Positions 1-63,664 of a stretch of 64,000 bases of DNA are shown in pieces (the stretch's first letter is position 1; each line of letters starts with the position of its first letter). The stretch is from contig OZ218957.1 in NCBI GenBank assembly GCA_965112735.1, positions 1,922,001 through 1,986,000 on the forward strand, given 5' to 3'. This DNA is from Phaeosaccion multiseriatum. Taxonomy: Eukaryota; Protista; Ochrophyta, other classes. Under the pieces are notes generated by a model. That model did no database searches, was not told where the DNA came from, and saw only the letters and a list, made by a program, of their open reading frames with translations. The translations under genes and the position numbers were made by a program.

Positions 1-3000
1 TCATGGAGATGGCAAAAGCATGCATTGGGGAAGCAGGCATCGAGCTCGACGCTTTGAGGCCTTTGATGGAGGCTGGGCTGGACTCCATGTCTACGGTGGA
101 GCTTCGGAGTCGACTCCAAGCTCGCTTCGGCGTGTCCGTCCCCAACGACGTGCTTTTCAGTCACCCCTCAATCGTAGCACTGTCTACCTGGCTGGAAGCC
201 TTGGTGATGGGATCTGAGGAGGATGATGAGGGTGAGAGTGAGTCGATTGGATACCAGAGGGGCGACATGAAGGCATCGTTAGCGGTGGTGGGCATGGCCT
301 GCCGCTTGCCAGGTGGTTCGAACAGCCCAGAGGAGTTTTGGGCCATGCTTAGCAATGGCAAGGACTGTGTCCAGCCTGCTCCGCTCGACCGCTGGGCGAG
401 CAAGGAGGAGGATGAGCAGCAGTGGCAAGGAAGCTTCATCGACGGCGTGGAAATGTTCGATCCATCTGTGTTCGGCATATCCAGCCCTGAGGCTTCTGCC
501 ATGGACCCACACCAGCGGGTGATGCTGGAGGTGGGACTGGAGGCGCTTGTGACTGCGGGCTATACCAAGCAAAGCCTGAGTGGCAGTCAGACCGGAGTGT
601 TCGTGGGCATGAGCGGCAGTGACTGGGGATCCCTCGGGGAAGGCTCATCCTCGACAGGCGCGTATAGCACCATGGGCGCAGCCGGGGCAAGCGTGTCCAA
701 TCGTCTGTCGTACACGCTCGGACTGCAGGGCCCGTCCATGACCACTGACACGGCGTGCTCGTCCTCTCTGGTGGCCCTGGACAGCGCTTGCAGCAGCTTA
801 CGCATGGGCAAGTGCGACGCAGCCGTGGTGGGCGGAGTGAATCTGTTGCTGGGCACGCAGAGCTTCGAAAGGCTGAAGGGAAGTGGTTTCTTATCGCCCG
901 ACGGGTACGTGCGCTTATGTGTGGAGTGCTTTCATTCCTGTTTGTGTTCACCCCTCTTCTCCCTTTGGCCATCGCCTCTCTGGCAAATCGCACAGTGAGA
1001 ACGACTTGAGTGCCTTACCAAGTCAACTTATCTCACCCCATCCCACAATTCCCATGCCCTTCTCAGGCGCTGCAAGACGTTCGACGCGTCGGCAAACGGA
1101 TACGTGCGTGGTGAAGGATGCGGTGCCGTTGTGCTGAAACTTTTGGATGACGCCCTCGCTGCCGGAGACACGGTCCTCGCTGTGATTGAGGGCTGTGCCG
1201 TGAACCACAACGGAACCAGTGCCCGCCTCACGGCCCCCAGCCCCGCCGCCCAGCAGAGACTCATCGAGGCGACGCTGCGTGAGGCCGGTCGAGAGGGCTC
1301 CGAGGTACGCATCGTGGAGGCACACGGCACGGGCACATCTCTCGGCGACCCAATCGAGATGAGTGCTCTCAGGGCCACGTACGGAAAGAACCGTGACGAG
1401 TCTTTCCCGCTGGTAGTGGGTGCGGTCAAGACCAACATTGGCCATCTGGAGGGTGCGGCGGGCATTGCCGGGCTCATCAAGGCCGTCTTGATGCTGCAGC
1501 ACCGCGCCGTGCCCGCCAACCTTCACCTCGAGAGCGTCAACCCGGAGCTGGACATGGACGGCTTCCCCGTGCAGCTCCCGTCGGTGATGGTGCAGCTGGA
1601 GGACGAGGGAGATATGTTGGTGGGGGTGAGCTCATTCGGGGCGGGAGGAACGAATGCACACGTGCTGCTGAGGAGCCATGGGGAGAAGAGTGAGGGTGCG
1701 CCAGGCCCTAATCCGGTGCAAGCAGAGACTCCAGTGGCGTTCTTGTTCACTGGGCAGGGTTCGCAGTACGTGGGCATGGGCAGGGAGCTGTACGAGAAGG
1801 AGGGCGTGTTCCGCGAGTGCATACAGCGGTGCAGCGGACTTCTCATGGAGCGGGCCTGGCTGGACAAGTCTGTGGTGGAGCTCATGTACCCTACCGCCGC
1901 TCAGGACGGGAAGGAGGAGCAGGAGAAGACTGCACAAGCGCTGCTGAAGGAGACACGCTACTGCCAGCCGTGCCTGTTTGTGCTGGAGTATGCCCTGTGT
2001 GAGCTGTGGAAGTCGGAGGGCGTGGAGCCTTCCATGGTGATGGGCCACAGCCTGGGCGAGGTAGTGGCGGCGTGTGTGGCCGGCGTCATGTCGCTGGAGG
2101 ACGGGCTGATGCTGTCCGCCAAGAGAGGGGCCGCCATGCAGGCCTGCCCCGAGGGCGATGGAGTGATGTTCGCAGTGAGGGCAGGCAAGGAGGCGACTTT
2201 GGCAAGCATCGACGCTGCGGGGGGGACAGGCGAGGTGGTGCTGGCGTCGTCGAATGGACCGAGCGCGAGCGTGATCTCTGGGGCGCGCAGTGCTGTGGAC
2301 AAGGTGGTGGAGAAGCTCACAGCCGATGGGGTGGGCTGCAAGGCCCTGGAGGTGTCGCACGCCTTCCACTCTCCTCTGATGGAGCCCGCTGTACGTGCGC
2401 TGGAGGAGGCTCTGAGGCAGGTGTCATTCAGCGCCCCACGCATTCCCCTGGTGTCCAACGTGACGGGCGAGGTGGTGAAGGCGGAAGAGGTTTCCCAGAA
2501 GACGTACTGGGAGCAGCACATGCTCTCTCCTGTGCTGTTTGCAGAAGGTATCCACACGCTGGTGGAGCACTTGATGAGGGACAGGAGGGGCTTGAATGTT
2601 GTGGAGGTGGGGCCCAATGCCGTGTTGAGCAGCATGGGAGCCAAGTGCGAGCATCGGGAGGGGCTGGTGTGGGTCTCTACTCTAAATAGAGGACAAAACT
2701 CCAACGAGGCATTTCGAGCGGCCCTGAGTAAAGTGATTGGCCGGGAGCACGTGGAGCTGTATCGGACACGCAGACCGTTTCCTTGGTACGATGTCAGGGG
2801 TAGTGGCAGGAGGAAGAAGAGAGGAAAGGGCATTGTCAAAGCTCTTCCCCCAGCGACGGCTTGGGAGGAAAGAGGAGGAGTGAGGCTGTCGGTGGAGCAG
2901 CACCCGTACCTTGCAGATCACGCAGTCAATGGTGGAGTGGTGTTGCCAGCGGCCGTCATGCTGGCAATTCTCTATGACACGCGCTGCTGCAGCACGTCAG

Positions 3001-6000
3001 GGGCCGGGGGTGAAGAGGGTGGTGGTGAGAGGACCATTTGCGACGCGGAGTTCGTTCGCTTCTTCCCAGTGAAGCAGTCCGAGGCTCAAGCTCTCGTAGT
3101 GTGCGACGATGTGTCTGGTAGTGGCAGGAGTGGCAGCGTCTCCCTGTGCAAGCCCGACAAGAAGGAGCTGCCCTACATGACAGCGAAGCTCGTGAGCGAC
3201 AGCGAGAGCGAGAGCCCTCCGCATGTACATAACGACATACACGCGCTATGGAAGGCTTGCCCGGACACGGTGGACGCCAGTCTGCTATACGAGGAGCTGG
3301 AGCGGCACACGGGCAGCCGCTTCGGCCCTGCCTTCCGGAACATTGTTGAGGCAAAGGCGGGCGACGGCGAGATGGTCGGGCGCGTACGGGTGCAAGGAGT
3401 GGCGCCGTTCGCTTTCGACCCCACGGCGCTGGAGAGCTGCTTCCAAATAGCGGGTCTGCTCGGCGGCGTCGCAGCGTTTGTGCCCACCAAGCTACGACGC
3501 CTTGTTGTGCTAACAGAGGCTGTGGGGCCGCAATTGCTGTGCCATACAAAGCTCATCGACAGGACTGCCACCAGCATCACCGCGGACATGGTGACCATGT
3601 CCCCTCGAGGAGAGGTGTATTGGAGAGTGGACGGACTGGTGCTCATGCAGCTGCCTCAGAGTCCGAATGCATGGCTGAAGCTGAGTGTGTACCACACTGT
3701 CTTCGCAGCCCCCGTAGAGTCTCCGGAGACGCCTCTGTCAGTAGCTGCAGCGGCAGCCGTGCCGTCGCGTCGCGTGTGCGTGCTAGGAATGGACAAGGAG
3801 ACGGAGGAAAGCATCGGCGTGCCGTGCGCTGACCTGGCTGAGGCTGATGTCGTGGTTGACGCACGACAGTCCGTCGAGGAGGCTGCCGAGCTGCTGCTCA
3901 AGTGTGTGGAGGCAAGCCGTGTTGGGCAAACTCTGAAAGCCCTCGTGTGGCTGGTCGTGCAGGCACCGCACACGCGGCAGGAGAAGGCACAGGAGGAGCG
4001 AAGAGCTTCCCCATCTCTCATGCTGGGATTGACTTGTGCTGCGCGCTGCGAGAACCCCTTTCTACCAATCTACTGCTTTCTGCTTCCTCCCGGCATGCAG
4101 CTCTCGGTCGGGTGGCAACACGTCCTTCCCTACATGCGGATGGAGAGGTTACCCGCAGACAAGGAGTGGCATCTCCTCCCAGGCACCGCTGCTCCCACTA
4201 CTCACGCGTGGCGTGTGCCTCGACTGCAGCTGCTGCCGAAGGAGCAGGCCGTCACACCGGAGGAACGTGCCGCGCCCGCCTTCCAGCTGCAAGTGGACCG
4301 CCCCGGGCAGCTGTCCAGCCTGCGCTGGCACGTGCTTCCTCGCTGGCCCTTGCAGGAGGGCGAGGTGCGTCTGGAGATCCACGCCGTTTCGCTGCACTTC
4401 AAGGACTTGCTGCTGGCCATGAGCATGTTGCCTGGGTTCCACCCCGTGCTGGGATTGGAGGCGGCAGGACGTGTCATCGAAGTGGGAGCAGGCGGAGAGG
4501 GGAGCACCCAACAGCACTGCATGTACTCGGTAGGCGACGAGGTGGTGAGCATGACCATGACCGCGGCCTCCAGTGACGCGCGCTACTCGCTGATGGGCAC
4601 AGAGGCCATCGCCCCCGTGTGGAGTCTGCGGCCCAAGCCGGCCAAGCTTAGTATGGTGGATGCTTCTGGCTTCTACGGTGTGACGGTGACGGCCTACTAC
4701 GCACTCATCGTGAAGGCCCAGCTGCAGCCCTCCGACACTGTGCTCGTGCACTCCGCAGCGGGCGGTGTAGGGCTGGCTGCGGTCCAAATTGCCAAGCACA
4801 CCGGCGCCACCATCATCGCCTCGGCCGGATCCGTAGCAAAGCGCGAGCTGCTGCGAGAGAGCTATGGTGTAAAGAACGTGATTGATTCCCGCGCACCCTC
4901 CAAGTTCGTCGATGAGATTCGACGCGTGACGGGAGGTAGGGGGGTGGACGTGGTGCTGAACAGCATCGCCGGGGAGGGCATGGAGCAGAGCTTGAAGGCC
5001 ATGGCTCCGCTCGGGCGCTTCGTGGAGATTGGCAAGCGCGATATTCTAAGCGACAACACGGTGCGCATGGGAGGCCTCAAGGAAAACGTGTCTCTCTTGA
5101 GTGTGCACATTGACCTGCTGATGGAGTCTCACCCGGAGGTGGTGCAGCAGCTCGTGTCAGACTGTCAGCAGCTGCTGGAGGAGGGGAAGCTCTCTCCCGT
5201 GCCCACGACTGCCTTCGCCGCAGCCGATGCGACGGAGGCCTTCAAGCTGATGCGCATGGGGTCGCACACAGGCAAGCTCGCCATCGTCATGACGGCGCCC
5301 GAGGGGGACGAGAAGAGCACTCCAACTCGCAATGTGCGTATACCTCCCTTTTTGTCCTCCTCTGTTGTGTTTGTCTGTATCCGGCGTTCCGGCGATTATG
5401 CTGAATGAGCTTTACTCATGTCCCACCCCGTCCCATCCTCCCCACCCATGACGCAGGCACGCTTCCTCCCGCAGCTCAGCGCCGACTGGACAGCCCGCTC
5501 GTCTCAAATCTTCCACAGTGCCGAAACGCTGGTAAGATCAGAGATGAGGACGTCAAGGGTAGCACTCACAACACCCTCCGCCAGAGTGGAGCAGTCGGTC
5601 ATTTGCTCTCTCTCACCTTTTAACTGTGCGGTCATCCGACAGCCTGCCTTCGCTCCATCTCTCTCTCCCTCTTGTCTCGTATCTCTCCTACGGCTGTACA
5701 GGTGGTGGCGGGAGGAGCGAGTCGGATGGGAATCTCCCTCGTGGAGTGGATGGTGACCAACGGGGCACGACACATCGTCCTGCTGGTGTCAAGGCCAGTG
5801 GGCAGTCTCTCCCGCTCCATACAGCTTCGAGTGGAGAATCTCCGCAAGACCGGCGCTCATCTGCTCGTGCGAAAGTGTGATGTGGCAGACGCGGGGGCCC
5901 TTGCCGCGCTCTTCAAGGAGGCATGTTCGCACCCGCCGCTCACGGGCATTTTCCACTTGTCCTCAGGCCACGAGACCACCACACCTGCCCGTGGGGAAGA

Positions 6001-9000
6001 AGCGACGTTTCAAATGTCAGATGTGAAGGCGATAGAGGCCGAGAATCTTCACCGCCTCTCTGCTGCCCCTGAGCACCGAGACCGAGTGCGCTACTTTGTA
6101 CTCTTCTCGTCTCTGGCAGCTGCTCACGGCAGCACCAAGCAGGCCGACGATGTGGGGGCACACGCCTCTCTTGGAGCGCTGGCGACGCACCGCCGGGCCA
6201 TGGGACTCCCTGCCATGGCCGTCAACCTTCCGTTGGTACTCGGGGCTGGCCTCTACGACGTGAGGCAATTGCGGCAGCGGCGTTCGGACTCGTCGGGCAC
6301 GGGGCTCAGCGGGGTTGAGGTTGAGCTCGTCTTTGCACACCTTCGGCGTCTGCTCCTGTACAACCAACATCTACCTGCAGAGATGAGCATCGATCGGCCG
6401 CTCTTGGACGCATATCGCAAGGCCAGCTCCAATGAGAGCTTGTACGATCTCGTGGATGAGGAAGGGCGTTTGCAGACACACACACCTATCTCTGCGAGAG
6501 AGACGCCTCAAGCACGCCAGCAGCCCCAGCACACAGGAGCGCAGCAGTTGTTGGAAGCCAGATTGGATGAGGAGAAGGAGCAGCATCGGAAAGTTTTCTC
6601 GGAGGGACACGCAAGGCTTGCTTCTGTAGTCCAGCCCGCTGTGGTGGCCCAAGTTGCCGCCCTGTTGGGAGCGGAGTGGCATGAGGTGGACCCAACGGCC
6701 AGCCTGCCCGAGCTTGGGCTGGACTCCCTGGCGGCGCTGGAGCTGGTGAACTGGGTGGGGGAGGAGTATGGTTTGACACTGTCTCAGAGCGAGCTTCTGG
6801 ACGGTGCATCAGCGAGCGATGTTGTCAACACGATCTGCTCAAGCGGAGGAGGGGGCATTGCTACTGTGTCTACACCTTCCAAGCTTTCGACTGTCGCAAA
6901 GTCGCCCCGGCAAGGCGTCAACTCTCCCGCCAGTTTTGCAGCCAATGAACCCGCCTCGCGTTCTGCCGTGGAGTCCGCTGTGGTGGCCCAAGTTGCCGCC
7001 CTGTTGGGAGCGGAGTGGCATGAGGTGGACCCAACGGCCAGCCTGCCCGAGCTTGGGCTGGACTCCCTGGCGACGCTGGAGCTGGTGAACTGGGTGGGGG
7101 AGGAGTACGGTGTGACACTGTCTCAGAGCGAGCTTCTGGACGGTGCATCAACGGGCGATGTTGTCAACACGATCTGCTCAGGCGGAGGAGAGGGCATTGC
7201 TACTGTGTCTGCACCTTCCAAGCTTTCGACAGTCGCGAAGTCACCCCGGCAAGGCGTCAGCTCTCCCGCCAGCTTTGCAGCCAATGCACCCGCCTCGCGT
7301 TCGGTCGTTGAGCCCGCTGTGATGGCCCAAGTTGCCGCCCTATTGGGGGCAGAGGTGCATGAGGTGGACCCAATGGTCAAGCTGCCCGAGCTTGGGCTGG
7401 ACTCCCTAGCGACGCTGGAGCTGGTGAACTGGGTGGGGGAGGAGTACGGTGTGACACTGTCTCAGAGCGAGCTTCTGGACGGTGCATCAGCGAGCGATGT
7501 TGTCAGCGCGATCACTGCGGACGGAAGTGCTCGAGAGAGCTACGCTGGAAACGGGTATCAGCGATCACGACAGCAATCGCTGCGCGCAACTGCAGTGCCT
7601 GAGCGAGTGGAGAAGGCGGCCCCTCTGTCCACACCTCCACCCACTCTCGCTTATACGAGCATTGCTGTGCCGCCCAAGCTGACAGTGGAGAGTACCCAGC
7701 GACTTCTGGCCGAGATCAAGCGCGCAAAGGGCGTGATTGCCTTCAGCGGAGGAAGCGCCACCGAGCCGTTCTGCCTGGGAGCGGATCTCGAGGGTGCGGG
7801 GGGCTTTGGTACCGACGCTATGGCGGAAACGCTAGAGAGCTTCCGACGGCTCCAGGAGGTGCTCAACGCGTACCCTTCTCCGATCATCGTGGTGGTGAAC
7901 GGCGCGTGCAGAGGAGGGGGCATGCTCTTCCCCTGCTGCTCGACCGTGTCCATTGCGGATAACGAGAACGCCTCCTTTGCCTTCCCAGAGATCCGCCGAG
8001 GGGGGCTGCCCGGCTTGGTGTCGGTGTCCGCTCAGCTGCGCATGACGAAAGCGCAAGTGACGAGGCTAATGTGCACTGCTGACGTCATTACTGCGGCAAG
8101 CGCACTCAACTTGGGGCTTGTTGATATCGTCACAGCCAATGAGGAGGAGGCGCATGTGGAGATGAAGCGCCTGGTGCAGCGCTTCCGTAGCATTCAACCC
8201 GACCTGCTCGAGCGCTGTGTGACGAAGTATCCATTGACCACCCCGGCGGAAGCAGCAGTGGAGATGGGCCGGTTCATGGCACCTCCTCCTCCCGCGCACG
8301 ATCCGAAGCTGGTGGAGGTGTCGTACAGGGGTGAAGGAGGGGGGGTGGCGGTGGTGGAGCTCACCGATCTGCAGCACTTTAATGCTATTTCTCGCAGCCT
8401 GTCCTCGGCCCTGTCCTCGGCCCTGGAGGAGGTGACCAGCAGCAAAAGGGTTCGCGCCGTGGTGCTGCAGGGGCGAGGGCGGCACTTCTGTACCGGAGCC
8501 AACCCTGCGGAATTTGCGGAGTCTCTTAAAACGCTCCCCGTGATGGCAGCTGCCCAGCTCGTCTTCGAGGTGTACGAGCCCTTTGCGCGGCTGTGTGAGC
8601 TCAAACTCCCCGTCATATGTGTGAGCCACGGCAAGGTATGAAGATGTTGGGCATCAAGCGGTGATGGTTGCTCTATTTCTCGCACGTTGTTGTGTTCCTA
8701 CGTCGATTCGCCGTCGCTGAAATGCCCTCCTCGTTCGCTCCTTGCGGTCTCTCTTGTGCACCAGGTGCTTGGAGGAGGGCTCGCCGCAATGCTGAACTCG
8801 GACTTCCGTATCGCAGTGGCGGGGAGCGTCTACAACTACGGAAACCTCCCGCGGGGTGTGTGCCCAGGCCTACTCCTGTCCCGTAACCTCGAGCGCACTG
8901 TAGGAGCCCCTGCCGCCATGGCGCTGTACCTCCGTGACGATGTGCTGAGCTCCAGCGACGCTCTCTCTGCCGGGCTCGTGCACGAGGTGTGCCCCACCCT

Positions 9001-33000: not shown

Positions 33001-36000
33001 TGAGCTGGGCGAGGTGGAGGCTGCCCTGCTCCATCAAGAGGGTGTGAGGAGCGCTGTGGCAGCCGTGGACAGAGAGCGTGAGACGGTTGTGGCGGCTCTG
33101 ACACCTTCTAGTGCCGAAGTTGAGATGGTTCTGCAAGGAGTGAGCAAGCTGCTACCGGCATACATGGTGCCGAGCAAGGCTGTGGCCATGGATGCTCTAC
33201 CGATGACGAGCAGCGGGAAGCAAGATGTGAAAGAGGTTCTCAGAGCCATTCGAGTGGCACATGACCATGGCCCTGGCCGGCAGCGAAGCCTAGGCGTCAG
33301 CGATGACGCACCTATGGACGCACCTATGGACGACACCACCCGTCAAGTGCTCGACATTATGCGAGAGGCCGTTGGGCGACCGGATCTGCGAGCCAGCGAC
33401 GACTGGTTCGCCGAGGGAGGTACTTCGCTTAACGCTGCAAGTGTCACTGCGCGCATCCGCGCAGAGGTGCCAGGCCTCGAGGTGAGTAGGATGGAGGGCG
33501 GTCTTTCTGCTGTGGTCGGTACTTCCAAATGGTTTGCTAATATAGATGTTGACTGTCGGATATCCTTACTCGTTGCTGTACTCAGGCGCTCCAGGTGGCG
33601 GAGATGTTCCAGACACCCACCGCGAGGGGTGTGTCTCGCTTGTGTGCGAGCAGGGAGGACACGCTTCCTGGCATGATGGTGATATCGCCTGTAGGCGACG
33701 ATTGTGAGGCTCCAGCGTCGTACCAACAGGAGCACATGCTGCTGTCGGACCTGGCGCTGCGAGCGGGCGACCCAGACGGGAGGGCGCGATACAATGTGCC
33801 CATGCTTCTACCCGTGCCCAGCTCCGAGTCGGAGAGAGAGCCCAGCGAGGTTGTGGACGGCTTGTCCCGTGCCCTGTGCGCCGTGGTGGAGCGTCACGAT
33901 GTTCTACGATTGGCGCTAGGCTGGTCACCGGAGGGGACGCTGCAGCAGGTGCGGCTGCAGACCACAGCAGCGGAGGTTGTGGCGTCAGTGCTCCTGTCCG
34001 CCGAGGCGAACAGCATCGAAGAGGCCGAGAGCGTACTATTGGCAGAGGCGGGGCGTCTGTTTGACTTGGACGAGGAAAGGCCACTCTGGCGCAGCACCAT
34101 CGTCACGCTTGCACCGCCCCAGGATGGTGAGAAGGAGCACCCGCTGGGGCCGCAAGCGGTGCTGTGTGTCTTCCACCACTCCATCATGGATGGGTGGTCG
34201 TCCAAGCTGTTCTCGCGCGAGCTGTTGGTCATGTGGGGGGCTGTCGTGTCTGGCCGAGAGGCGACGAAGGCGCTAGCAGCTCTGCCGTTTGGGTATGCAG
34301 ACTACTCCCGGTGGCAGCGGTCGCGACTGGACGGGGACAACGGCCTGGCCCTGGAGCAGCTGTTGGAGTACTGGCAGGGGCAGCTAACGGGGGCGTCTTC
34401 ACTGAACCTGCCCCTCGACCGACCGCACGGTGCTTTCGGCCCGCACCTGACGGAGACTGTAGGTCAAGATGGGATTGTGGGGGTGAACGCCGGGAGTGTC
34501 GCTGTAGTTCTGCCGGCTTCGCTGATAGTGAAGCTGAGCAATTTATGCTCGAGCAGCTCCGCCACGCTGTTTGTGGGGCTCATGGGCGCGTTCCAAGTGC
34601 TGCTGGCTCGTGTGTGCGGAGCGGAGGATGTGGTGGTGGGCACTGCGCACTTCGGAAGAGACGTGGCGCAAGGCTTGGAGGGCGTGCTGGGATGCTTCGT
34701 CAACACCCTCGCGTTCCGTCTGGGCCTGGGAGGAAGCCCCAGCTTTCGGGAGGTGCTGCTTCGCGTACAGGTCGCGTATCTGGGTGCCATGAAGCACGCC
34801 GAGGCACCGTTCCACAAGGTGGTGGAGCGGGCCCAGCTGGGCACACAGAGTGGTGGCAAGGCGCTGCAAGCCTTCTTTGTACTGCAGGAGGGAGATGCCA
34901 GCGCCGTGGAGGAGGAGGCCCTGCTGTCATCTGGAGCACGCCACAAGATCATGACGGAGGAGGCTGGAGAGCAGCAGGCCAACCACTTTAGCAAGACGGA
35001 CATCGAGCTATGCCTTGTGCGCAGCACGGACAGTGCATCGGACATGCACGGCAGCCTGTGCTTCAATACGGCGGTGCTCGACCAGGCCACAGTGGAGACC
35101 CTGGGGCGGAGCTTTGTGGCGCTGCTGGAGAGTGCAGTGGGCAGGCCGGGCGAGAGCGTGTGGAAGCTGAGTCTCTTGGCACACGAGGACCGTGTGAAGG
35201 TGGTGGAGACGTTGAGCGGCGCTGCACTGGTGGCGGGGGATGCAAATGGAGATGAGGAGGGAGGTGCAGAGGAAGCATCACCACCACCGCCCCTCCTGCA
35301 CGCGGCTTTCGAAGGGATGGCCTCTCGCAGTCCGGAGCAGGAAGCCCTGCACGAGTATGAGACGGGTCGGGTGATGAGCTACGGGGAGCTGAATGGGCAT
35401 GCGAATGCGGTGGCATGCATGCTGCAGGGGAGGGGCGTGGGGCCGGAGTGCCTGGTGGGGGTGCTGATTGCTGGGGACTGCGTGGAGGCGGTTGTGGCAG
35501 TGCTGGGCGTGCTCAAGGCCGGGGCGGCGTACGTGCCCCTGGATCCCGAGCATCCCGACGATAGGCTGTCGATGATCGCAGAAGACGCCGGGCTGAGCGT
35601 CGTTCTGACAGCAGCATCTGGGGCGGACCATGTGGAACAAGGCCTCCCCACAGGCGGTAGGTCGGCTCGCACCGTCGGAGACGCGAGCTGTGTGGATGTA
35701 AGGACCATGATGCAGCTCGAGGGGGCTGCTACGACAGTCTCTGAGGTGGAGTGCAAGGCCGTCGACATCAATGTGGCGTATGTGATATACACGTCTGGCA
35801 GCACCGGGCGACCGAAGGGTGTGGTGGTCGAGCATAGAAACGCGGCCAGCTTCATGGCGACTCTATACGAAACGATGCTCGGCACCATAGACCCTTCGTC
35901 ACGGGTTCTGCAGAGCAGCGCTTTGACTTTCGACATGTCGGTGACGTTGATCTTCGGGGCTCTGTCATGCGGGGCGACGCTGTGCCTGGTGCAAAGGCTC

Positions 36001-39000
36001 TCCATGTTGAGCGAGCTGCCAGAGGTTGTGCGCTCGCTTGGGGTATCGATCTTGATGTGCACTCCGTCACTACTGTCCTTGCTCCCACAGCCTCATGGTG
36101 GAGAAGTGGCTTTCCCGAGTCTTCGGTCGATCGCGCTTGGGGGAGAGGCCTTACGTCAAGAGCAGGTCGAGTACTGGAAACACCGAGTGCGACTGTGGAA
36201 CGGATTTGGACCCACCGAGACGACGATGGTAGTTACCTGCCACGAGTACACACCTTCTGCCGTGCCGAGCGCGTCCGTCATCGGCAAGCCCCAAGCCGGC
36301 GTGCAAGTGTATGTGGTGGACAAGCGTCTGCAGCTGGTGCCTCAGGGCGTGGAGGGCGAGCTGTGCATTGGGGGGAGACAGCTGGCGCGTGGGTACTTGA
36401 ATCGCCCAGAGCTCACGTCGAAGGCCTTCATCCCCGCGCCCTTCCTGACGGATCAGCGCAGAGTGTATCGTACGGTAAGTCGAAAAGGTTGCCCATGGGT
36501 GTGCGGCTTTGTGTAGTGTACATTTGGCTTGCTTTTGGCATGCCATGCCGTGAAAAGCAGAGACCGCAGGGGGAGGTAGTTCTCTCTGTTGCCCTGTGGC
36601 ACTGTTCTCCCCCCTCATCTGACGCGTCTCAAACTTAACACGTTCTGACAGGGTGACTTGGTGCGGCAGCTGGCAGACGGATCGCTGGTGTTTAGGGGTC
36701 GCCGAGACTCTCAAGTGAAGGTGCGCGGCCATCGCATTGAGCTGGGCGAGGTGGAGGCTGCGCTGCTCCATCAAGAGGGGGTGGTGAGCGCTGTGGCAGC
36801 CGTGGACAGAGAGCGCAAGACGGTTGTGGCGGCTTTGACACCTTCTAGTGCCGAAGTTGAGATGGTTCTGCAAGGAGTGAGCAAGCTGCTACCGGCATAC
36901 ATGGTGCCGAGCAAGGCTGTGGCCATGGATGCTCTACCGATGACGAGCAGCGGGAAGCGAGACGTGAAAGAGGTTCTCAGAGCCATTCGAGCGGCACATG
37001 ACCATGGCCCTGGCAGGCAGGGTAGCGTAGGCGCCAGCGATGACGCACCTATGGACGACACCACCCGTCAAGTGCTCGACATTATGCGAGAGGCCGTTGG
37101 GCGACCGGATCTGCGAGCCAGCGACGACTGGTTCGCCGAGGGAGGTACTTCGCTTAACGCTGCAAGTGTCACTGCGCGCATCCGCGCAGAGGTGCCAGGC
37201 CTCGAGGTGAGTAGGATGGAGGGCGGTCTTTCTGCTGTGGTCGGTACTTCCAAATGGTTTGCTAATATAGATGTTGACTGTCGGATATCCTTACTCGTTG
37301 CTGTACTCAGGCGCTCCAGGTGGCGGAGATGTTCCAGACACCCACCGCGAGGGGTGTGTCTCGCTTGTGTGCGAGCAGGGAGGACACGCTTCCTGGCATG
37401 ATGGTGATATCGCCTGTAGGCGACGATTGTGAGGCTCCAGCGTCGTACCAACAGGAGCACATGCTGCTGTCGGACCTGGCGCTGCGAGCGGGCGACCCAG
37501 ACGGGCGGGCGCGATACAATGTGCCCATGCTTCTACCCGTGCCCAGCTCCGAGTCGGAGAGAGAGCCCAGCGAGGTTGTGGACGGCTTGTCCCGTGCCCT
37601 CTCCGCCATGGTGCAGCGTCACGATGTTCTGCGATTGGCGCTAGGCTGGTCACCGGAGGGGACGCTGCAGCAGGTGCGGCTGCAGACCACAGCAGCGGAG
37701 GTTGTGGCGTCAGTGCTCCTGTCCGCCGAGGCGAACAGCATCGAAGAGGCCGAGAGCGTACTATTGGCAGAGGCGGGGCGTCTGTTTGACTTCGACGAGG
37801 AAAGGCCACTCTGGCGCAGCACCATCGTCACGCTTGCACCGGCCCAGGATGGTGAGAAGGAGCACCCGCTGGGGCAGCAAGCTGTGCTGTGTGTCTTCCA
37901 CCACTCCGTCATGGATGGGTGGTCGTCCAAGCTGTTCTCGCGCGAGCTGTTGGTCATGTGGGGGGCTGTCGTGTCTGGCCGAGAGGCGACGAAGGCGCTA
38001 GCGGCTCTGCCGTTTGGGTATGCAGACTACTCCCGGTGGCAGCGGTCGCGACTGGACGGGGACAACGGCCTGGCCCTGGAGCAGCTGTTGGAGTACTGGC
38101 AGGGGCAGCTAACGGGGGCGTCTTCACTGAACCTGCCCCTCGACCGACCGCTCGGTGCTTTCGGCCCGCACCTGACGGAGACTGTAGGTCAAGACGGGAG
38201 TGTGGGGGGGGGCGCCGGGAGCGTCGCTATTGTTCTGCCGGCTTCCCTGATAGTGAAGCTGAGCAACCTATGCTCGAGCAGCTCCGTCACGCTGTTTGTG
38301 GGGCTCATGGGCGCGTTCCAAGTGCTGCTGGCTCGTGTGTGCGGAGCGGAGGATGTGGTGGTGGGCACTGCTCACTTCGGAAGAGACGTGGCGCAAGGCT
38401 TGGAGGGCGTGCTGGGATGCTTCGTCAACACCCTCGCGTTCCGTCTGGGCCTGGGAGGAAGCCCCAGCTTTCGGGAGGTGCTGCTTCGCGTACAGGTCGT
38501 GTATCTGGGTGCCATGAAGCACGCCGAGGCACCGTTCCACAAGGTGGTGGAGCGGGCCCAGCTGGGCACACAGAGTGGTGGCAAGGCGCTGCAAGCCTTC
38601 TTTGTACTGCAGGAGGGAGATGCCAGCGCCGTGGAGGAGGAGGCCCTGCTGTCATCTGGAGCACGCCACAAGATCATGACGGAGGAGGCTGGAGAGCAGC
38701 AGGCCAACCACTTTAGCAAGACGGACATCGAGCTATGCCTTGTGCGCAGCACGGACAGTGCATCGGACATGCACGGCAGCCTGTGCTTCAATACGGCGGT
38801 GCTCGACCAGGCCACAGTGGAGACCCTGGGGCGGAGCTTTGTGGCGCTGCTGGAGAGTGCAGTGGGCAGGCCGGGCGAGAGCGTGTGGAAGCTGAGTCTC
38901 TTGGCACACGAGGACCGTGTGAAGGTGGTGGAGACGTTGAGCGGCGCTGCACTGGTGGCGGGGGATGCAAATGGAGATGAGGAGGGAGGTGCAGAGGAAG

Positions 39001-42000
39001 CATCACCACCACCGCCCCTCCTGCATGCGGCTTTCGAAGAGATGGCCTCTCGCAGTCCGGAGCAAGAAGCCCTGCACGAGTATGAGACAGGTCGAGTGAT
39101 GAGCTACGGGGAGCTGAATGGGCATGCGAATGCGGTGGCATGCATGCTGCAGGGGAGGGGCGTGGGGCCGGAGTGCCTGGTGGGGGTGCTGATTGCTGGG
39201 GACTGCGTGGAGGCGGTTGTGGCAGTGCTGGGCGTGCTCAAGGCCGGGGCGGCGTACGTGCCCCTGGATCCCGAGCATCCCGACGATAGGCTGTCGATGA
39301 TCGCACAAGACGCCGGGCTGAACGTCGTTCTGACAGCAGCATCTGGGGCGGACCATGAGGAACAAGGCCCACCCTCAGGCGGTAGGTCGGCTCGCACCGT
39401 CGGAGACGCGAGCTGTGTGGATGTAAGGACCATGATGCAGCTCGAGGGGGCTGCTACGACAGTCTCTGAGGTGGAGTGCAAGGCCGTCGACATCAATGTG
39501 GCGTATGTGATATACACGTCTGGCAGCACCGGGCGACCGAAGGGTGTGGTGGTCGAGCATAGAAACGCGGCCAGCTTCATGGCGACTCTCTACGAAACGA
39601 TGCTCGGCACTATAGACCCTTCGTCACGGGTTCTGCAGAGCAGCGCTTTGACTTTCGACATGTCGGTGACGTTGATCTTCGGGGCTCTGTCATGCGGGGC
39701 GACGCTGTGCCTGGTGCAAAGGCTCTCCATGTTGAGCGAGCTGCCAGAGGTTGTGCGCTCGCTTGGGGTATCGATCTTGATGTGCACTCCGTCACTACTG
39801 TCCTTGCTCCCACAGCCTCATGGTGGAGAAGTGGCTTTCCCGAGTCTTCGGTCCATCGCGCTTGGGGGAGAGGCCTTACGTCAAGAGCAGGTCGAGTACT
39901 GGAAACACCGAGTGCGACTGTGGAACGGATTTGGACCCACCGAGACGACGATGGTAGTTACCTGCCACGAGTACACACCTTCTGCCGTGCCGAGCGCGTC
40001 CGTCATCGGCAAGCCCCAAGCCGGCGTGCAAGTGTATGTGGTGGACAAGCGTCTGCAGCTGGTGCCTCAGGGCGTGGAGGGCGAGCTGTGCATTGGGGGG
40101 AGACAGCTGGCGCGTGGGTACTTGAATCACCCAGAGCTCACGTCGAAGGCCTTCATCCCCGCGCCCTTCTTGGCGGACCAGCGCAGAGTGTATCGTACGG
40201 TAAGTGGAAAAGGTTGCCCATGGGTGTGCGGCTTTGTGTAGTGTACATTTGGCTTGCTTTTGGCACCCCATGCAGTGAAAAGCAGAGAGCTCAGGGGGGG
40301 GGGGGTGGAGGTAGTTCTATCTGTTGCCTTGTGGCTCTGTTCTCATCTGACGCGTCTCAAACTTAACACCTTCTGACAGGGTGACTTGGTGCGGCAACTG
40401 GCAGACGGATCGCTGGTGTTTAGGGGTCGGCGAGACTCTCAAGTGAAGGTGCGCGGCCATCGCATTGAGCTGGGCGAGGTGGAGGCTGCGCTGCTCCATC
40501 AAGAGGGTGTGAGGAGTGCTGTGGCAGCCGTGGACAGAGAGCGTGAGACGGTTGTGGCGGCTCTGACACCTTCTAGTGCCGAAGTTGAGATGGTGCTGCA
40601 AGGAGTGAGTAAGCTGCTACCGGCATACATGGTGCCGAGCAAGGCTGTGGCCATGGATGCTCTACCGATGACGAGCAGCGGGAAGCGAGACGTGAAAGAG
40701 GTGCTGAGAATGATCAAGGTGGAAGCGAAGGGGAAGGAGTCCGGTGTACAATCGTCCGACGGCGACGAGGCGTTAGGCGACACTGCCCGCCAAGTGCTGG
40801 GCATCCTTAGGCAGGCCACGGAGCAGCCTCACTTGCAGGCCAGTGACGACCTGTTCGCAGAGGGAGGCACATCGTTGAGCGCGGCTCAGGCGGTTTCGCG
40901 TATCCGGGCAGAGGTGCCCGGCTTCGAGGTGAGTGACTTTGAGCACAAAGCATTTGTCATCTTGTGTCCCGCTCTTGTCGCTGACCCTGTTGTGTCTGTG
41001 TGACTCCTGCAGGCTCTGACAGTAATGCAAATCTTCCAGAACCGAACCGCTGTGGCACTTTCAGTGCTTGGTGCCGCGGAGGAGGGCCGAGGCAGAGGAG
41101 ACAGCGAAGCCCGACTGAAGGACGAGGAGCGCGATTTGTCAGTCGGTGGAGAAGGGGAAGCGATGAAAGCGCACCGGAGGCTCAGCACTGGCAAGCAAGT
41201 GGTGCTGCAGATTCTGAGTTGGCTACTTGTTGTTGCTGTGCTCAGCTGCGGGTTTTCTCCCAGCTTCGTTGGCGTGTACTTGCTACGTAGAGCAGGGCGC
41301 GGCAATACGACGATTCTTTCTTGGCTACCACTCCTCGTCGTCGTGTCAGTAAGCTGTGTCCTTGCCCTGATTGCAGTGGTGAAGTGGACTGTGCTTGGCC
41401 GCATGCGACCGGGGCGATGGTCCGTGAGGAGCTCGTACTACTGGCGGTGGTATGCTGTGCAGAATGTGCTGAAACTTGCCACACTGCTGATTTCTGTCCT
41501 CCGTGGTACCTTCGCCTTGCGGGTGTGGAACCGCCTGCTGGGGGCACGAATCAGTGGAAGCGCACGCTTAGAGAGCTGGTTGCTGCACGAGCATGACTTG
41601 ATCGAGATTGGAGAAGGGGCCGTGATCGAGTACGGAGCCATCATTCGCCCGTCTGTAATTACTCGGAATGGCATGCTCCATGTTCATCGCGTGAGGATCG
41701 GGAAGGGAGCAAAGGTGGGAATACTGTCCAACGTGTGTCCGTCTCCCTGGGAGGGGCGGCAGACACAGGAGGGGGAGGAGGGCCTGAATGAGGAGCCAAA
41801 GGACTTGGTCATCGGCGAGGGGATGGAGCTCGGTCCGTACGCGTCGCTCGGCCATTCGTCACTCTCTGGCCCGCTGGCAGAGGTCCAGCGCGAGCAGGGG
41901 CTGCGGCGGATAAGAAAAGAGCTTTGTGCCTTGGTCCTGCTTTCAGTGACCAACTTGGGGTCGTACCTGCTGCCCCTCTGGATACTCGTGCTTGCCGGTG

Positions 42001-43637
42001 GGGGCGATGACGACGGCGCGGGGGAGAGTGTCCCCATCTTCGCTCGTGCATTGGCATTCCCCGTGCTGCTGTTGACTGTAAGCCTGCTGTACATGGTGGC
42101 AGTGCTATCGCTACAGCGTGTGTTCTTGCTGCTCGGCCCCAGCGCCACGACACGGCTGTCACTCGGAGTTCTTCAGGAGAGTCCTCTCTTCAAGGTTGGC
42201 TCCCTTCTTGTGGCACAATGTGGGCTCAACCGTGCTTTTGCTTCCGCCATGGGCGCCAGGCTGGAGCGGGGGTGCGCACTTCTTACCCTTCCTATCACTA
42301 CGATATGGGAGAAGCTCAGGATGGAGGAAAACTCCCAGATCGCGGGCTCTGTGCACCTTTTTGCTGATGCGGGTGGTCGTGGAGAGGAGGATACGCAAAG
42401 CATCACAATCGGGCGCTTCAGCATTGTTGCGAACGAAGCTGTTCTCCTAGGCGGAGCTTGCATTGGGGACGGAAGCACGGTCGCAGATCGCACCGTTGTG
42501 AGTAGAGACGACGACGTGCCGCGCAACTCTTCTGTAGTGGGCGCCCCTCGGCCGTTTGTATTGCCGAACCCAGTGAGTGCTGCTGCTGAGAAGGATAGCG
42601 TCGATGCAGCAGCCAGTCTTCCTGTTCCGTCGAGGATGCACAATGCGCTGTGTGGGCTTGCGACTGTGGTGCTGTTCCTCGGCGTATGGTGTCCGGGGGT
42701 GCTGATCAGCGCGTCGGCATCTGACCTGCTTCTTCGCAACGGCCATGTGCATGGGGCTGCCGCCTTCTGTCCCTTCGTCCTTCCGGAAGTGGTGGCGAGG
42801 GATACTCTGAGCGAGAGCCATACTGGAGTGTTCTTTCTTGTGTTGGGGAGCTTCGTCTTTCAAGTTCTCATGGGCTTGGCGGGCGCTTGCTCAGCCATAA
42901 TTTTCCATCGCCTTCTCGCCACATCCTTGCATGCCAGAGAGGGGCAGCCTCCCATAGCGCTCGATTCGTCTTCGTTGGATTTATACCGCTTGGGCAGCAT
43001 GGGCCCCACCTTCATAGAAGCTCTCTGCATCAATTACTTCGCGGGCGGGCCGGTGTACGCGGCGTGGCTGCGGCTGCTGGGGGCACGTGTTGGCAAGGAC
43101 ACATCTTTATGGCTCAGGCCTACTGATGCGCATCTTCTCGTCATTGGAGACGAAGCGGTGATGTTGCAAGACTCCACAGTCTTCGCGCACACCATCGAAG
43201 GCACGGGAGGGTTCGTCTTCAAGACTGTGCAAGTCGGGGAGAACGCGTGGCTCGGAGCAAGGGCTCACTTGCAGCCTGGATGCCGCGTTGAAGCAGGAGC
43301 TAACGTTGGTGACTTGAGCATGGCCATGAGAGGTGAAAGTGTCACCAATTCAAAGCGTGGAGACGTGGTGTGGGTGGGCATACCGCTGAGAAAGCACATC
43401 TTGTCCTCCCGAGCGCGCGCTGCGCCGCGTCACGGAACGGAGCTGGACAGCGGCGGAGCCCCGGCAGAAGAGCGAACCCTTCGCAACAAGGGCAGTGGAG
43501 AGTCGAGGAGACATGTGGTTCGAGAGAGAAGTAGCCCTCGCCGAGGAGTAGCGGCTTTCCGGTGGCAGAGTGGCAGTGGCGTCGATGAGCATCAGCCTGA
43601 CGAGACAAAGACTGACGATGGATTCGAGGTAGTTTGA
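1..43637 (+). CDS. Giant hybrid cis-AT type I PKS / NRPS megasynthase (5'-partial), 17 exons, ~13,780 aa within window; one apparent 1-nt frameshift at ~12601
   Basis: The long + ORFs join through GT-AG introns at 905-1066, 5334-5456, 5532-5701, 8636-8764, 9131-9239, 9792-9947, 10522-10669, 13712-13860, 19963-20120, 26220-26376, 32738-32914, 33482-33585, 36475-36651, 37207-37310, 40200-40379 and 40929-41012. Splicing restores motifs such as SPDG/W|RCKTFD (KS), HGK|VLGGG (ECH), GRLE|VGTES (HMGS) and YRT|GDL (A7). Stop TGA at 43635-43637. The ORF begins inside an ACP, so the gene starts upstream of the window. Confidence 0.9.
3..205 (+). other. ACP domain (end of an upstream PKS module)
   Basis: [19 protein letters not shown], GxDS phosphopantetheine motif. 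Confidence 0.9.
270..5295 (+). other. PKS module A, part 1: KS1-AT1-DH1-ER1
   Basis: KS motifs DTACSSS/HGTGT/NIGHLE (intron 905-1066); AT motifs GQGSQ, GHSLG, HAFHS (malonyl-type); [18 protein letters not shown]; [12 protein letters not shown] and [10 protein letters not shown]. Confidence 0.92.
5457..6350 (+). other. Degenerate ketoreductase (KR0) of module A
   Basis: KR scaffold present ([25 protein letters not shown]). The NADPH motif reads GGASRMG, and the catalytic GQANYAAAN reads KQADDVGAH (Tyr->Asp at 6149-6151, Asn->His). Includes mini-exon 5457-5531. Confidence 0.8.
6630..7520 (+). repeat. Three tandem ACP domains (339-nt tandem triplication)
   Basis: [10 protein letters not shown](A/T)[12 protein letters not shown] occurs three times; DS codons at 6722, 7061 and 7400 give an exact 339-nt period. 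Confidence 0.93.
7670..9330 (+). other. Two tandem enoyl-CoA hydratase/crotonase domains (ECH1 dehydratase-like, ECH2 decarboxylase-like)
   Basis: ECH1: [32 protein letters not shown]2: [30 protein letters not shown]|[18 protein letters not shown] (no catalytic Glu). Introns 8636-8764 and 9131-9239. Confidence 0.85.
9565..11095 (+). other. Embedded HMG-CoA synthase domain (eukaryotic/mevalonate type)
   Basis: [24 protein letters not shown]|VGTES (catalytic Glu), [17 protein letters not shown] (catalytic Cys), [12 protein letters not shown] (catalytic His), YSYGSG. Introns 9792-9947 and 10522-10669. Confidence 0.92.
11230..13010 (+). other. Atypical KS2 (Cys-His-Asn) followed directly by an ACP, no AT: probable non-elongating module
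   Basis: DMACSSS (Cys 11782), EAHGLGS instead of HGTGT, NMGNLEG instead of NIGHLEG (Asn 12373). [16 protein letters not shown] at ~12790-13010. The frame discontinuity lies between KS2 and the ACP. Confidence 0.8.
13090..19270 (+). other. PKS module B: KS3-AT2-DH2-ER2-KR2-ACP (fully reducing)
   Basis: DTGCSSS/HGTGT/NVGHLE; GHSLG/HAFHS; [11 protein letters not shown] with HPAVLD; IHAASGGVG; GGLGALG, AGVLDD (B-type), GQANYAAAN; GLDSL. Confidence 0.93.
19345..25525 (+). other. PKS module C: KS4-AT3-DH3-ER3-KR3-ACP (fully reducing; duplicate of module B)
   Basis: Same motif set as module B, offset ~6.25 kb (KS introns at 13712, 19963, 26220). Confidence 0.93.
25605..29970 (+). other. PKS module D: KS5-AT4-KR4-ACP (beta-hydroxy-forming)
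   Basis: DTACSSS/HGTGT/NIGHLE; GHSLG/HAFHS; no DH or ER; KR GGLGGLG and NQSAYAGAN, lacks LDD; ACP GLDSM. Confidence 0.9.
30040..33640 (+). other. NRPS module 1: C-A-T
   Basis: C HHCIFDG; A motifs [43 protein letters not shown]|[30 protein letters not shown]; T FAEGGTSL. Confidence 0.93.
33700..37365 (+). other. NRPS module 2: C-A-T
   Basis: C HHSIMDG; A and T nearly identical to module 1, offset 3737 nt. Confidence 0.93.
37425..41065 (+). other. NRPS module 3: C-A-T
   Basis: C HHSVMDG; A nearly identical to modules 1-2 (offset 3725 nt); T more diverged ([11 protein letters not shown]). Confidence 0.93.
41190..43390 (+). other. Terminal membrane domain: three units of TM helix pair plus left-handed beta-helix (Pls / NRPS_term_dom-like)
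   Basis: Pairs of hydrophobic segments followed by [44 protein letters not shown]; AMGARL...[27 protein letters not shown]; [12 protein letters not shown]...[10 protein letters not shown]...SMAMRGESV...WVGIP. This is the pattern of the C-terminal region of epsilon-poly-L-lysine synthetase-like NRPSs (recognised by eye). Confidence 0.8.
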
Positions 43638-43745
43638 TCCCTCTAGAATTGTAGCGACAAAGAAGAAGAATAATATATTATTTGTAAAAGGAAATTGAAC
43701 TACGAGTTGTAAAAGGAAATTGAAAATTTAAAGAAGACAAAAATG
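43638..43745 (+). promoter_or_regulatory. AT-rich putative 3' UTR / polyadenylation region of the megasynthase with an 18-nt direct repeat
   Basis: Abrupt AT-rich stretch after the stop codon; TTGTAAAAGGAAATTGAA at 43682-43699 and 43707-43724. Confidence 0.4.
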
Positions 43746-43987: not shown

Positions 43988-44887
43988 TCAGTGCGAGAGT
44001 AGCTCTTCTTTCCATGACATATCCCCCTGCATGAAGCGAGACACATGTTTGCTGGAGAGCGGCCTGAGGTTTGTGGTATCTCCCACGGCCCTGTCCGCCG
44101 CCCTCCGTTGTCCTCCTCTTCTTCTTCTTCCTCCTCCTCCTCCTCCTCCTCCTCCTCCTCCTCCTCCTCCTCCTTCCCCTCCTCCTCCTCCTCCAGCATG
44201 TACCTTATGCCCTGGAGTGAAGGGCGTGCTCTGCTGCATTCGAGCGCACATCTGATGGGGAAAAGCACTTGGGTGGAGAGGAAGGCGAATGTTCAGCGCA
44301 TCACCTCGGCCCGCTCCAATTAAGAAGAGTGCTTTCTGTCGCTTCTTCTCTGTCCGAGGTCCTGCCGCTACCCTCTCCTTTCTTCCACCACTCGCATCAG
44401 CAGGACAGCCGCAGGACAGCGGGCCTCCGCCCCTCATCGTTGATCAAGATTGCAAAGTTGTGCTGGCATCGAACTTGAGCATCAGAGGCACTCGATGTGC
44501 TGGACCCCCCCTCCCCCCCCCCGGTGCTATCACACGCGCTGTCTCACTGTCATGCCAGACGCCACGTTCGGCAGCTAGTGCGACTTCTCTCACACAAGGG
44601 AGAGGGTGCATGGGGAATAGCTCACATGCTCCTTCCTTCCGCCCATCCTCTTGCCTGTCTCGTGTCGTCAAGTAGGGCGGCGACGAGCTGGCTCTGCCCA
44701 GCTCAGCTTAGCACGCCAACGATGCCCCTTCCCTCATCTTTGTTGAGGACTGTGCTATGTGCGGCTGCGGCTGTCTTGTCTCGGCCTCGGCTGTGCGTCT
44801 TTCTCTCTCTCTCCCTCTCCGGCGTTTGAAGTTCTGTTGCCCATTCGAGGCAAACAAGAGGAGGCTTGACCTTCTCCCCTCCTGCCT

Positions 44888-55593: not shown

Positions 55594-56104
55594 CCCAGCA
55601 CTCCCTGTAGTCCACGTAGGACACGTAGAGGGAAGAAGGAGAATTGAGAATTGGGCGGAGAATTGGGGGGCCATCGGGTGCCATCTGGTCGACCCTGCCA
55701 TATCCTGCCATCGGGGGGGGCACGCTTTCACAACCCCCCCTTTATTATTCATATCCACCAATCTCTCTCCTTGGTAAGTAGTGCCCCCCTTGGTCTCTGA
55801 TGGGCTCTGTTTCTGGGGACAAATCTCCGCTCTACGTGTGTTCCTGCTGCTGCTCCGCCCTCCTCTCGCCCGCTTTTTTTCCGTTTGGGGAGTGGGAGTG
55901 TGGAGGAGGAGGTGGGGGGTGGTGTCGTTGTTGCTGCACTTCTTCTTCGCCCCGAACTCACATCAAGCGTGCCCCACGTCTTCCCGTGGTCCCTTCCCGC
56001 CTGTTTCTGCCGTTCTTTGGACAGAAGCAGGCACGCGAAATAAGAAGAGGCTGCAGAGGGCGCGAGAGCGTTGATCTGAGGCAAGCAGAAGAGCGGCTCC
56101 CGCT

Positions 56105-56978: not shown

Positions 56979-57012
<34 letters not shown>

Positions 57013-63632: not shown

Positions 63633-63664
<32 letters not shown>

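Follow-up and report, generated by a model that had tools for sequence, protein, structure and literature searches.

The 64,000-nucleotide stretch of Phaeosaccion multiseriatum DNA analysed here (the window; contig OZ218957.1 of assembly GCA_965112735.1, positions 1,922,001 to 1,986,000 of the forward strand) raises the question of whether a run of about 20 long open segments at 3-43637 encodes one giant enzyme, and what such an enzyme would make. All coordinates refer to the window, and all features of the gene lie on the plus strand. Pfam analysis of the segments revealed domains of polyketide synthases (PKS) and nonribosomal peptide synthetases (NRPS) in collinear order, about 40 in total across the spliced gene. 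The 5' part comprises an ACP, a long KS-AT-DH-ER-KR0-ACP-ACP-ACP-ECH1-ECH2-HMGS module and a KS-ACP pair whose KS has a Cys-His-Asn active site. The 3' part consists of two KS-AT-DH-ER-KR-ACP modules, one KS-AT-KR-ACP module, three C-A-PCP modules and a terminal domain of the Pls/PosA type. The hallmarks of modular PKS-NRPS enzymes are present: (i) the Cys-His-His active site in four KS domains; (ii) the GHSLGE and HAFH motifs in four AT domains; (iii) HHxxxDG in all three C domains, with HHCIFDG in the first; (iv) the carrier-domain Ser; (v) the core motifs of the A domains. With moderate confidence, region 1-43637 is regarded as 41 kb of coding sequence from the 3' end of a single nuclear algal gene with introns, which encodes a collinear modular PKS-NRPS. 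Judged from its domains, the spliced protein of more than 13,700 amino acids should be an assembly-line enzyme for a methyl-branched hydroxy-fatty-acyl tripeptide released at the membrane.

The introns were picked from the enumerated GT-AG pairs between adjacent segments, according to the continuity of the protein with paralogous modules and with Pfam profiles. A total of 16 GT-AG introns of 84-180 nt with consistent phases have been identified. Four of them divide the KS domains of modules A to D (905-1066, 13712-13860, 19963-20120 and 26220-26376), two enclose a micro-exon ahead of the module A KR (5334-5456 and 5532-5701), one lies in ECH2 (8636-8764), one in a linker (9131-9239) and two in the HMGS (9792-9947 and 10522-10669). 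The remaining six divide the A domains (32738-32914, 36475-36651 and 40200-40379) and the PCP domains (33482-33585, 37207-37310 and 40929-41012). These introns are not chance finds, because 13 of the 16 hold a stop codon in frame and each of the remaining three would cause a frame shift, their composition differs from that of the exons (GC 51.5% and T 30% versus GC 61.3% and T 20%), every donor follows the consensus GT[A/G]NG(T/A), the Pfam profiles run on across the junctions (ketoacyl-synt to profile position 226 before and from 223 after), and positions are shared among paralogues. The KS is split at the identical residue and phase in four paralogous modules, between SPD[G/W] and RCKTFD, and each of the three NRPS modules is interrupted at the same pair of sites, one between YRT and GDL of the A domain and the other within the PCP. 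No further in-frame introns were found inside the long exons.

Since the introns split KS, ECH2, HMGS, A and PCP domains, the exons cannot be separate genes. The junction between the PKS and NRPS parts lies within the single exon 26377-32737. A set of several adjacent genes, whose separate polypeptides dock non-covalently as in bacterial clusters, is scarcely credible; a frame break at 12606-12609 may be read as a gene boundary, but 15 of the 16 exon boundaries, all except the linker intron, run through single domains or close beside them and have canonical splice sites, and no start/stop pairs were found at the remaining boundaries. The initial annotation had described the open reading frames as exons joined by 16 GT-AG introns of 84-180 nt, and all 16 were rebuilt; it had also counted about 40 domains and placed the 5' end outside the window, in agreement with the Pfam count and with a frame open from base 3, where the ACP of an upstream module (27-194; Pfam PP-binding) is located. 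Its claim of a single polypeptide does not hold for the assembled allele. The splitting introns and the collinear domains speak for it, whereas the break at 12606-12609 lies outside the 16 introns and had not been mentioned. The spliced product consists of 3868 + 9912 codons with no internal stop, and its two parts meet at this break, which was bridged with X in the translation.

At 12606-12609 the reading passes from frame 0 to frame 2, and the site is not an intron. In frame 0, the AT-less KS runs to about 12603 and closes with NAHVLIRK, the usual KS C-terminus; this frame stops at 12655-12657, and frame 2 carries the linker and the following ACP. A 17th intron at the break was tried and rejected: the only GT-AG pairs able to restore the frame are 50-137 nt long, start from poor donors and would remove conserved residues of the KS. 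Contigs from four sequencing runs with the same organism label (X1-X4) carry a one-base insertion behind 12608 in four of four runs, which gives a single frame from KS to ACP. They are about 1% divergent from the window (about 58 single-base differences in the 6 kb at 8050-14049), and some sites in this interval carry both forms within one run. The window's 70-nt form across the break is present in full in contigs of two further runs, X5 and X6 (four of four sampled words, share 1.00). With the insertion form in X1-X4 and the window form in X5 and X6, both forms therefore exist in public data, and two haplotypes or strains are present there. The assembled allele is interrupted by a one-base frame break after the AT-less KS, and another allele of the same organism is uninterrupted.

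The break may be real and mark a recently inactivated or split allele. Translation would then end 16 codons past the AT-less KS, and modules B-D, the NRPS part and the terminal domain, which fill the 9,900 codons that follow, would be unmade, or made through an unlikely re-initiation at the ATG at 12654. This possibility carries serious weight and falls somewhat short of being probable. It fits the lack of a usable intron at the break, the presence of the window's exact 70-nt stretch in X5 and X6 contigs, and the ATG overlapping a TGA at 12654-12657. However, nothing else is broken in the 41 kb of coding sequence, where every catalytic motif examined is in place, and X1-X4 of the same organism read through; X5 and X6 are possibly the assembly's own reads and may share a systematic read error with it, and the comparison covered four sampled words only. 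The overlap itself, in which the ATG of the downstream frame shares bases with the TGA ending the upstream frame (ATGA), resembles the coupled stop-start of bacteria and is probably coincidental.

What the enzyme would make depends on its modules, of which module A is the first complete one in the window. Its catalytic part (279-5282; Pfam) is composed of KS (279-904 + 1067-1532), AT (1740-2729), DH (2883-3659) and ER (4356-5282). The Cys/His/His of the KS and the ER motif HSAAGGVG are intact. The 75-nt micro-exon 5457-5531, bounded by GT-AG introns of consistent phase (5334-5701 in all), supplies the residues ahead of the KR Rossmann motif. The KR (5702-6238) is predicted to be inactive (KR0): its catalytic Tyr is replaced (QADDVGAH, versus Q[AS][NA]YAxAN in modules B-D) and its glycine motif is weakened to GGASRMG. 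Three tandem ACPs follow at 6641-6832, about 6980-7171 and 7292-7522, each a separate PP-binding stretch. They are near-identical and share LGLDSL. At the ninth residue past the Ser, they have a Trp that is absent from the other carrier domains of the gene, a possible counterpart of the Trp flag of branching ACPs. The ECH_1 profile is matched twice, by ECH1 (about 7604-8323), which keeps the second crotonase Glu (FPEIRRG), and by ECH2 (about 8324-8635 + 8765-9130), in which both Glu are missing. Behind the linker intron, with its GTAAGC donor and an alternative acceptor at 9290 (both acceptors keep the frame), an HMG synthase is encoded by three exons (9567-11091; Pfam HMG_CoA_synt_N and HMG_CoA_synt_C). 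Its catalytic Glu, Cys and His align with those of the plant HMGS 2f82.

An HMGS triad, an ECH pair and tandem ACPs are found together in a module that leaves a ketone, and the combination of a dead KR, tandem ACPs and HMGS-ECH1-ECH2 gives the logic of beta-methyl branching. This is where the initial annotation had placed the branch, and the KR without Tyr, the three ACPs, the two ECHs and the intact Glu/Cys/His of the HMGS point the same way. Module A would add malonate, and its dead KR would leave the beta-ketone on the tandem ACPs. The fused HMGS would then add acetate, with acetyl-CoA as a plausible donor, because the HMGS is of the eukaryotic, acetyl-CoA-using type. From the Glu pattern, ECH1 is expected to act as the dehydratase and ECH2 as the decarboxylase, leading to a beta-methyl branch, which the module A ER may saturate.

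The origin of the cassette was examined through its relatives. The eukaryotic HMGS model TIGR01833 is the best NCBIfam match on all three HMGS exons. The central exon matches plant 2f82 at E 1e-41 and the human cytosolic and mitochondrial enzymes at 1e-38 and 1e-37, compared to 1e-5 for PksG and 1e-13 to 1e-4 for other bacterial or PKS-type enzymes; with PksG at 1e-5, the HMGS is not of the bacterial PksG/CurD/MupH lineage. The best solved relative of ECH1 is isohexenylglutaconyl-CoA hydratase, and ECH2 matches ordinary enoyl-CoA hydratases; no ECH structures from PKS cassettes were found among the solved relatives of either. On these comparisons, the cassette looks recruited from eukaryotic primary metabolism, not transferred from a bacterial HCS cassette.

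Between the HMGS and module B there is an additional KS-ACP module without an AT. Its KS (11227-12603; Pfam) carries the motifs DMACSSS, EAHGLGS and KPNMGNLEG, and its ACP (12801-12995; PP-binding) resembles the in-line ACPs, unlike the tandem ACPs. This module had been left out of the initial summary, which went from module A on to modules B and C. The KS-ACP is probably an in-line module that would hand the chain on, more probably without extension. It is rather unlikely, on the other hand, that the Cys-His-Asn KS and its ACP are the malonyl-decarboxylase/donor-ACP pair of the cassette, comparable to PksF/AcpK or CurC/CurB. Such a pair would imply a complete five-part HCS cassette, and the KS of module B would take the chain straight from the tandem ACPs; the contiguity of ECH1-ECH2-HMGS-KS-ACP and the missing AT are consistent with this. 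Bacterial decarboxylase KSs of HCS cassettes are known to carry Ser, whereas this KS retains Cys; a Cys-to-Ser decarboxylase KS with a dedicated donor ACP was not found next to the HMGS. The ACP is also like the in-line ACPs in both sequence and linker, and the HMGS is of the type that uses acetyl-CoA.

The in-line transfer preferred here leads to modules B, C and D. Module B (13092-19243) and module C (19343-25509) each consist of KS, AT, DH, ER, KR and ACP (Pfam); the active-site motifs are present in both, the two modules are 82% identical at the DNA level, their DH-ER-KR sets are complete and their KRs carry LDD. Module D (25603-29950; Pfam) is formed by KS, AT, KR and ACP, with no DH or ER; its KR has the Tyr and no LDD motif. 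The ATs of modules A-D are all of the malonyl type, and each of these modules has its own, in line with the cis-AT organization first proposed. Modules B and C would add two saturated C2 units, and module D, where the KR is the sole reducing domain, a 3-hydroxy C2 unit. The full reduction in B and C and the 3-hydroxyl from D that had been predicted earlier are consistent with these domain sets.

The three NRPS modules follow in the order C-A-PCP. Module 1 (30113-33585) contains C (30113-31456), A (31571-32737 + 32915-33220) and PCP (about 33344-33481, continuing after its intron), and modules 2 and 3 are located at 33586-37310 and 37311-41012 (Pfam). Modules 2 and 3 share 97.5% DNA identity over 3.4 kb, introns included, and over the A-PCP part, modules 1 and 2 are 98% identical. 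Seen as a repeat, 31258-40709 is a tandem array with a unit of about 3.7 kb and 97.5-98% identity, again including the introns. Such identity suggests that the modules were duplicated, or homogenised by gene conversion, not long ago; strains may differ in the number of copies, or the array may be mis-assembled.

The pocket is the same in all three A domains: the core motifs give D-M-T-M-I-L-G-M-V-K, in a register that is also obtained by HMMER alignment to LgrA. An alpha-amino acid is the substrate to which Asp235 and Lys517 point. The rest of the pocket is hydrophobic, with Thr and not an acidic residue at position 239, and the Asp235 + Glu239 pair of diamino-acid A domains was not found. Deriving the substrate from the overall similarity to LgrA was rejected, as likeness does not indicate specificity. 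Three copies of one hydrophobic amino acid would thus be added, and the identical pockets bear out the earlier proposal of the same residue three times.

How the chain leaves the enzyme is a matter for the terminal domain (41013-43634), which was assigned to the Pls/PosA type through TIGR02353 (E 8e-42), hydropathy, a structural model and a fold match. Hydropathy revealed six transmembrane (TM) helices (41199-41255, 41325-41381, 41922-41978, 42051-42107, 42651-42707 and 42825-42920), whose three pairs alternate with three beta-helix blocks of hexapeptide repeats at about 41520-41882, 42210-42572 and 42990-43400. A His (43188-43190) and a Glu (43197-43199), near-invariant in the family alignment, are conserved in the third block. 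The Pls/PosA terminal domain has been defined as a C-terminal domain of about 730 residues, with six TM helices arranged in three pairs and with three soluble segments, each about 180 residues long (PMC10522769), and the hydropathy profile and the model both display this topology. With 32 aligned relatives as input, AlphaFold gave a model (pLDDT 69.9, pTM 0.76) that was matched by Foldseek to residues 618-1330 of PosA A0A5K6CNB8 with E 1.2e-25 and TM 0.64 (by query) over 791 columns, both structures being predicted. Each soluble block matches left-handed beta-helix acetyltransferases, and the PDB sequence search of the domain gave weak hexapeptide transferases only. A search of 1.84 billion representative proteins revealed 396 relatives of the domain at E<=1e-10, the best not beyond 1e-41 or about 35% identity; these are mostly bacterial proteins of about 1,300 amino acids with an A-PCP-terminal-domain organization. 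The identity to bacterial family members is about 20-35%. On the modelled structure, the domain is of the Pls/PosA fold and topology.

A separate observation concerns the range of the family: proteins of about 2,300 amino acids from Eucalyptus grandis and E. globulus have a carrier domain and an end related to the Pls/PosA terminal domain (E about 1e-19), so that the family extends well beyond microbes.

The terminal domain would take over the acyl-tripeptidyl chain of the last PCP and pass it to an acceptor at the membrane, either an amine or a hydroxyl, and would neither hydrolyse nor polymerise. The membrane-embedded character of the domain, visible in hydropathy, model and fold match, agrees with the off-loading at the membrane that had been suggested. 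Two other outcomes can be considered. Firstly, the 3-hydroxyl from module D could attack the last thioester and release a 13-membered cyclic lipodepsipeptide. The beauveriolides are 13-membered cyclodepsipeptides of a 3-hydroxyacyl unit and three amino acids, which speaks for such a cyclisation, as does the finding by Pfam of no TE, R or terminal C domain. It is nevertheless improbable, for no sequence feature favours cyclisation, and a free amine is the acceptor in those relatives of the terminal domain that have been characterised (PMC10522769). Secondly, an iterative action like that of Pls and PosA could yield an oligomer or polymer, a poly-amino-acid tail or linked lipopeptide units. The six-TM, three-block topology, the fold shared with PosA and the retained His and Glu would suit it. 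Set against the cationic A-domain codes of polycation synthetases (PMC10522769), however, the pocket here is hydrophobic, with Thr instead of Glu at 239, and the amino acid it loads probably has no side-chain amine for polymerising; the low identity to the bacterial family also speaks against iteration, which is even less probable than cyclisation. As the last amino acid is probably not a diamino acid, a single transfer to an external nucleophile is likelier than polymerisation.

Several observations weigh against the interpretation of the locus as one working gene with the product outlined above. The 5' end lies beyond the window. The frame break is present in the window and in contigs of two further runs (X5 and X6), and runs X1-X4 show even intron coverage and no splice joints across 8050-14049, i.e. 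they are DNA-like. The DH of module A has its His motif, with Glu replacing the usual Asp of the second motif, and the AT-less KS has Asn at the position of the second His. To our knowledge, the A-domain pocket fits no specificity code. Finally, the terminal domain scores 143.4 bits with TIGR02353, compared to the curated cut-off of 423.1.

The architecture had been put forward as unrecognised. Multimodular PKSs of Emiliania huxleyi carry ECH-ECH-HCS modules, known from genome prediction only (O'Neill 2020, Mar Drugs, PMC7073580), and ECH and HCS domains have also been found in Euglena megasynthases, so that the fused cassette is already known at the annotation level. Likened by description, the E. 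huxleyi enzymes and this gene are both eukaryotic algal megasynthases with two ECHs and an HMGS fused in PKS modules. However, there are differences: the E. huxleyi PKSs have one N-terminal AT ("semi-trans"), compared to four in-module ATs here, and the paper is silent on NRPS modules and on a Pls-type end, in contrast to the three NRPS modules and Pls/PosA-type end of this gene. The bacterial HCS cassettes (bacillaene PksF-I/AcpK, curacin CurB-F, mupirocin) perform the same HMGS, ECH1 and ECH2 chemistry on tandem ACPs with an unreduced ketone. In contrast to them, the parts are cis-fused here, the HMGS is nearer to plant and animal enzymes, and the ECHs are nearer to primary metabolism.

The PKZILLA genes of Prymnesium parvum are likewise giant algal PKS genes with a few short GT-AG introns, and each encodes one huge polypeptide, with RNA and proteomic support (10.1101/2024.01.29.577497). 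Their text includes no HMGS/HCS and names NRPS only for a loading ligase of the ANL superfamily.

The terminal part also has precedents. The Pls/PosA synthetases of epsilon-poly-L-lysine and delta-poly-L-ornithine (PMC10522769) possess an A-PCP directly before a C-terminal domain of about 750 residues, as found here; they are single-module enzymes of about 1,300 amino acids for a diamino acid, whereas this gene encodes a PKS-NRPS of more than 13,700 amino acids with a hydrophobic last A pocket. The survey of PosA proteins was restricted to those of 1,100-1,800 amino acids (PMC10522769) and would miss fused megasynthases because of this size limit. A 2026 survey describes a bacterial cluster with a separate Pls/PosA-type NRPS beside a PKS-NRPS. 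Among protists, Chrysoparadoxa australica CAM9397790.1 has the order ER-KR-ACP-C-A-PCP-terminal domain, with an A pocket that is also non-cationic, and a transcript of Stygiella incarcerata encodes PKS modules ending in a Pls-type terminal domain. The terminal domains of both are only 27-29% identical to that of this gene, and no HMGS cassette was present in the parts examined.

The searches for closer relatives gave the following results. The exon 26378-32737 has no close relatives, only bacterial PKSs with 27-57% local identity. Among candidates of 0.55-1.75 times the query length, no relatives were found for the HMGS-KS exon at E<=1e-90 or for the ACP3-ECH region at E<=1e-25, strict thresholds and a length window that leave room for distant or giant relatives. 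The metagenome scan gave matches at 32% identity only, and the protein-atlas searches returned generic KS and WRKY19-finger clusters only, with no HMGS-KS fusion. The claim of an unrecognised architecture is overstated, as fused ECH-ECH-HCS modules (PMC7073580) and the Pls-type ends of protist PKS and PKS-NRPS enzymes precede it. The sequence comparisons suggest a eukaryotic PKS-NRPS in which a fused beta-branching cassette of eukaryotic origin is joined to a release domain of the Pls/PosA type, a combination of moderate novelty.

The gene ends with a stop codon (43635-43637) and an AT-rich 3' stretch (to 43730), in which a unit of about 20 nt with TGTAA is duplicated (TGTAA at 43683 and 43708). 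The TGTAA units lie 46 and 71 nt past the stop, within 43680-43725, and TGTAA may be a polyadenylation signal, by comparison with green-algal genes. A long CCT/CTC trinucleotide repeat is located just 3' of the gene (44110-44195). No tailoring, transport or phosphopantetheinyl transferase genes were identified by Pfam in the 43.6-64 kb part of the window. On the plus strand, an open frame at 56075-58357 contains three WRKY19-type zinc-finger repeats (Pfam PF24906, E 9e-23), with the nearest protein-atlas clusters from diatoms, green algae and oomycetes. A further plus-strand frame of 1519 codons (59443-63999) leaves the window at its 3' end and has no Pfam match; its region has a strong purine skew (GC skew 0.24-0.32, AT skew about 0.2).

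Algal polyketides typically bear pendant methyl groups that stem from acetate. For dinoflagellate polyethers, molecular evidence of the HMG-synthase route was still missing according to a review of 2019 (PMC6835853). The gene described here offers an intact, testable eukaryotic branching cassette, whose HMGS points to independent recruitment from the mevalonate pathway, and the broken and intact alleles form a natural comparison for metabolomics. It is also a clear instance of a long PKS-NRPS that ends in a membrane domain of the Pls/PosA type for off-loading, of which no characterised example was found in the literature searched; if the acceptor is identified, this would be a new release mechanism for assembly lines. 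Taken jointly, the features may belong to a megasynthase family in which the cassette was assembled independently of bacteria from a mevalonate HMGS and primary-metabolism crotonases, acetyl-CoA is used directly, and a Pls/PosA-type domain replaces the thioesterase and releases the product onto a membrane or extracellular acceptor. This joint interpretation is tentative and its parts may well not all hold; if true, it would mean a so far unknown class of branched lipopeptide conjugates.

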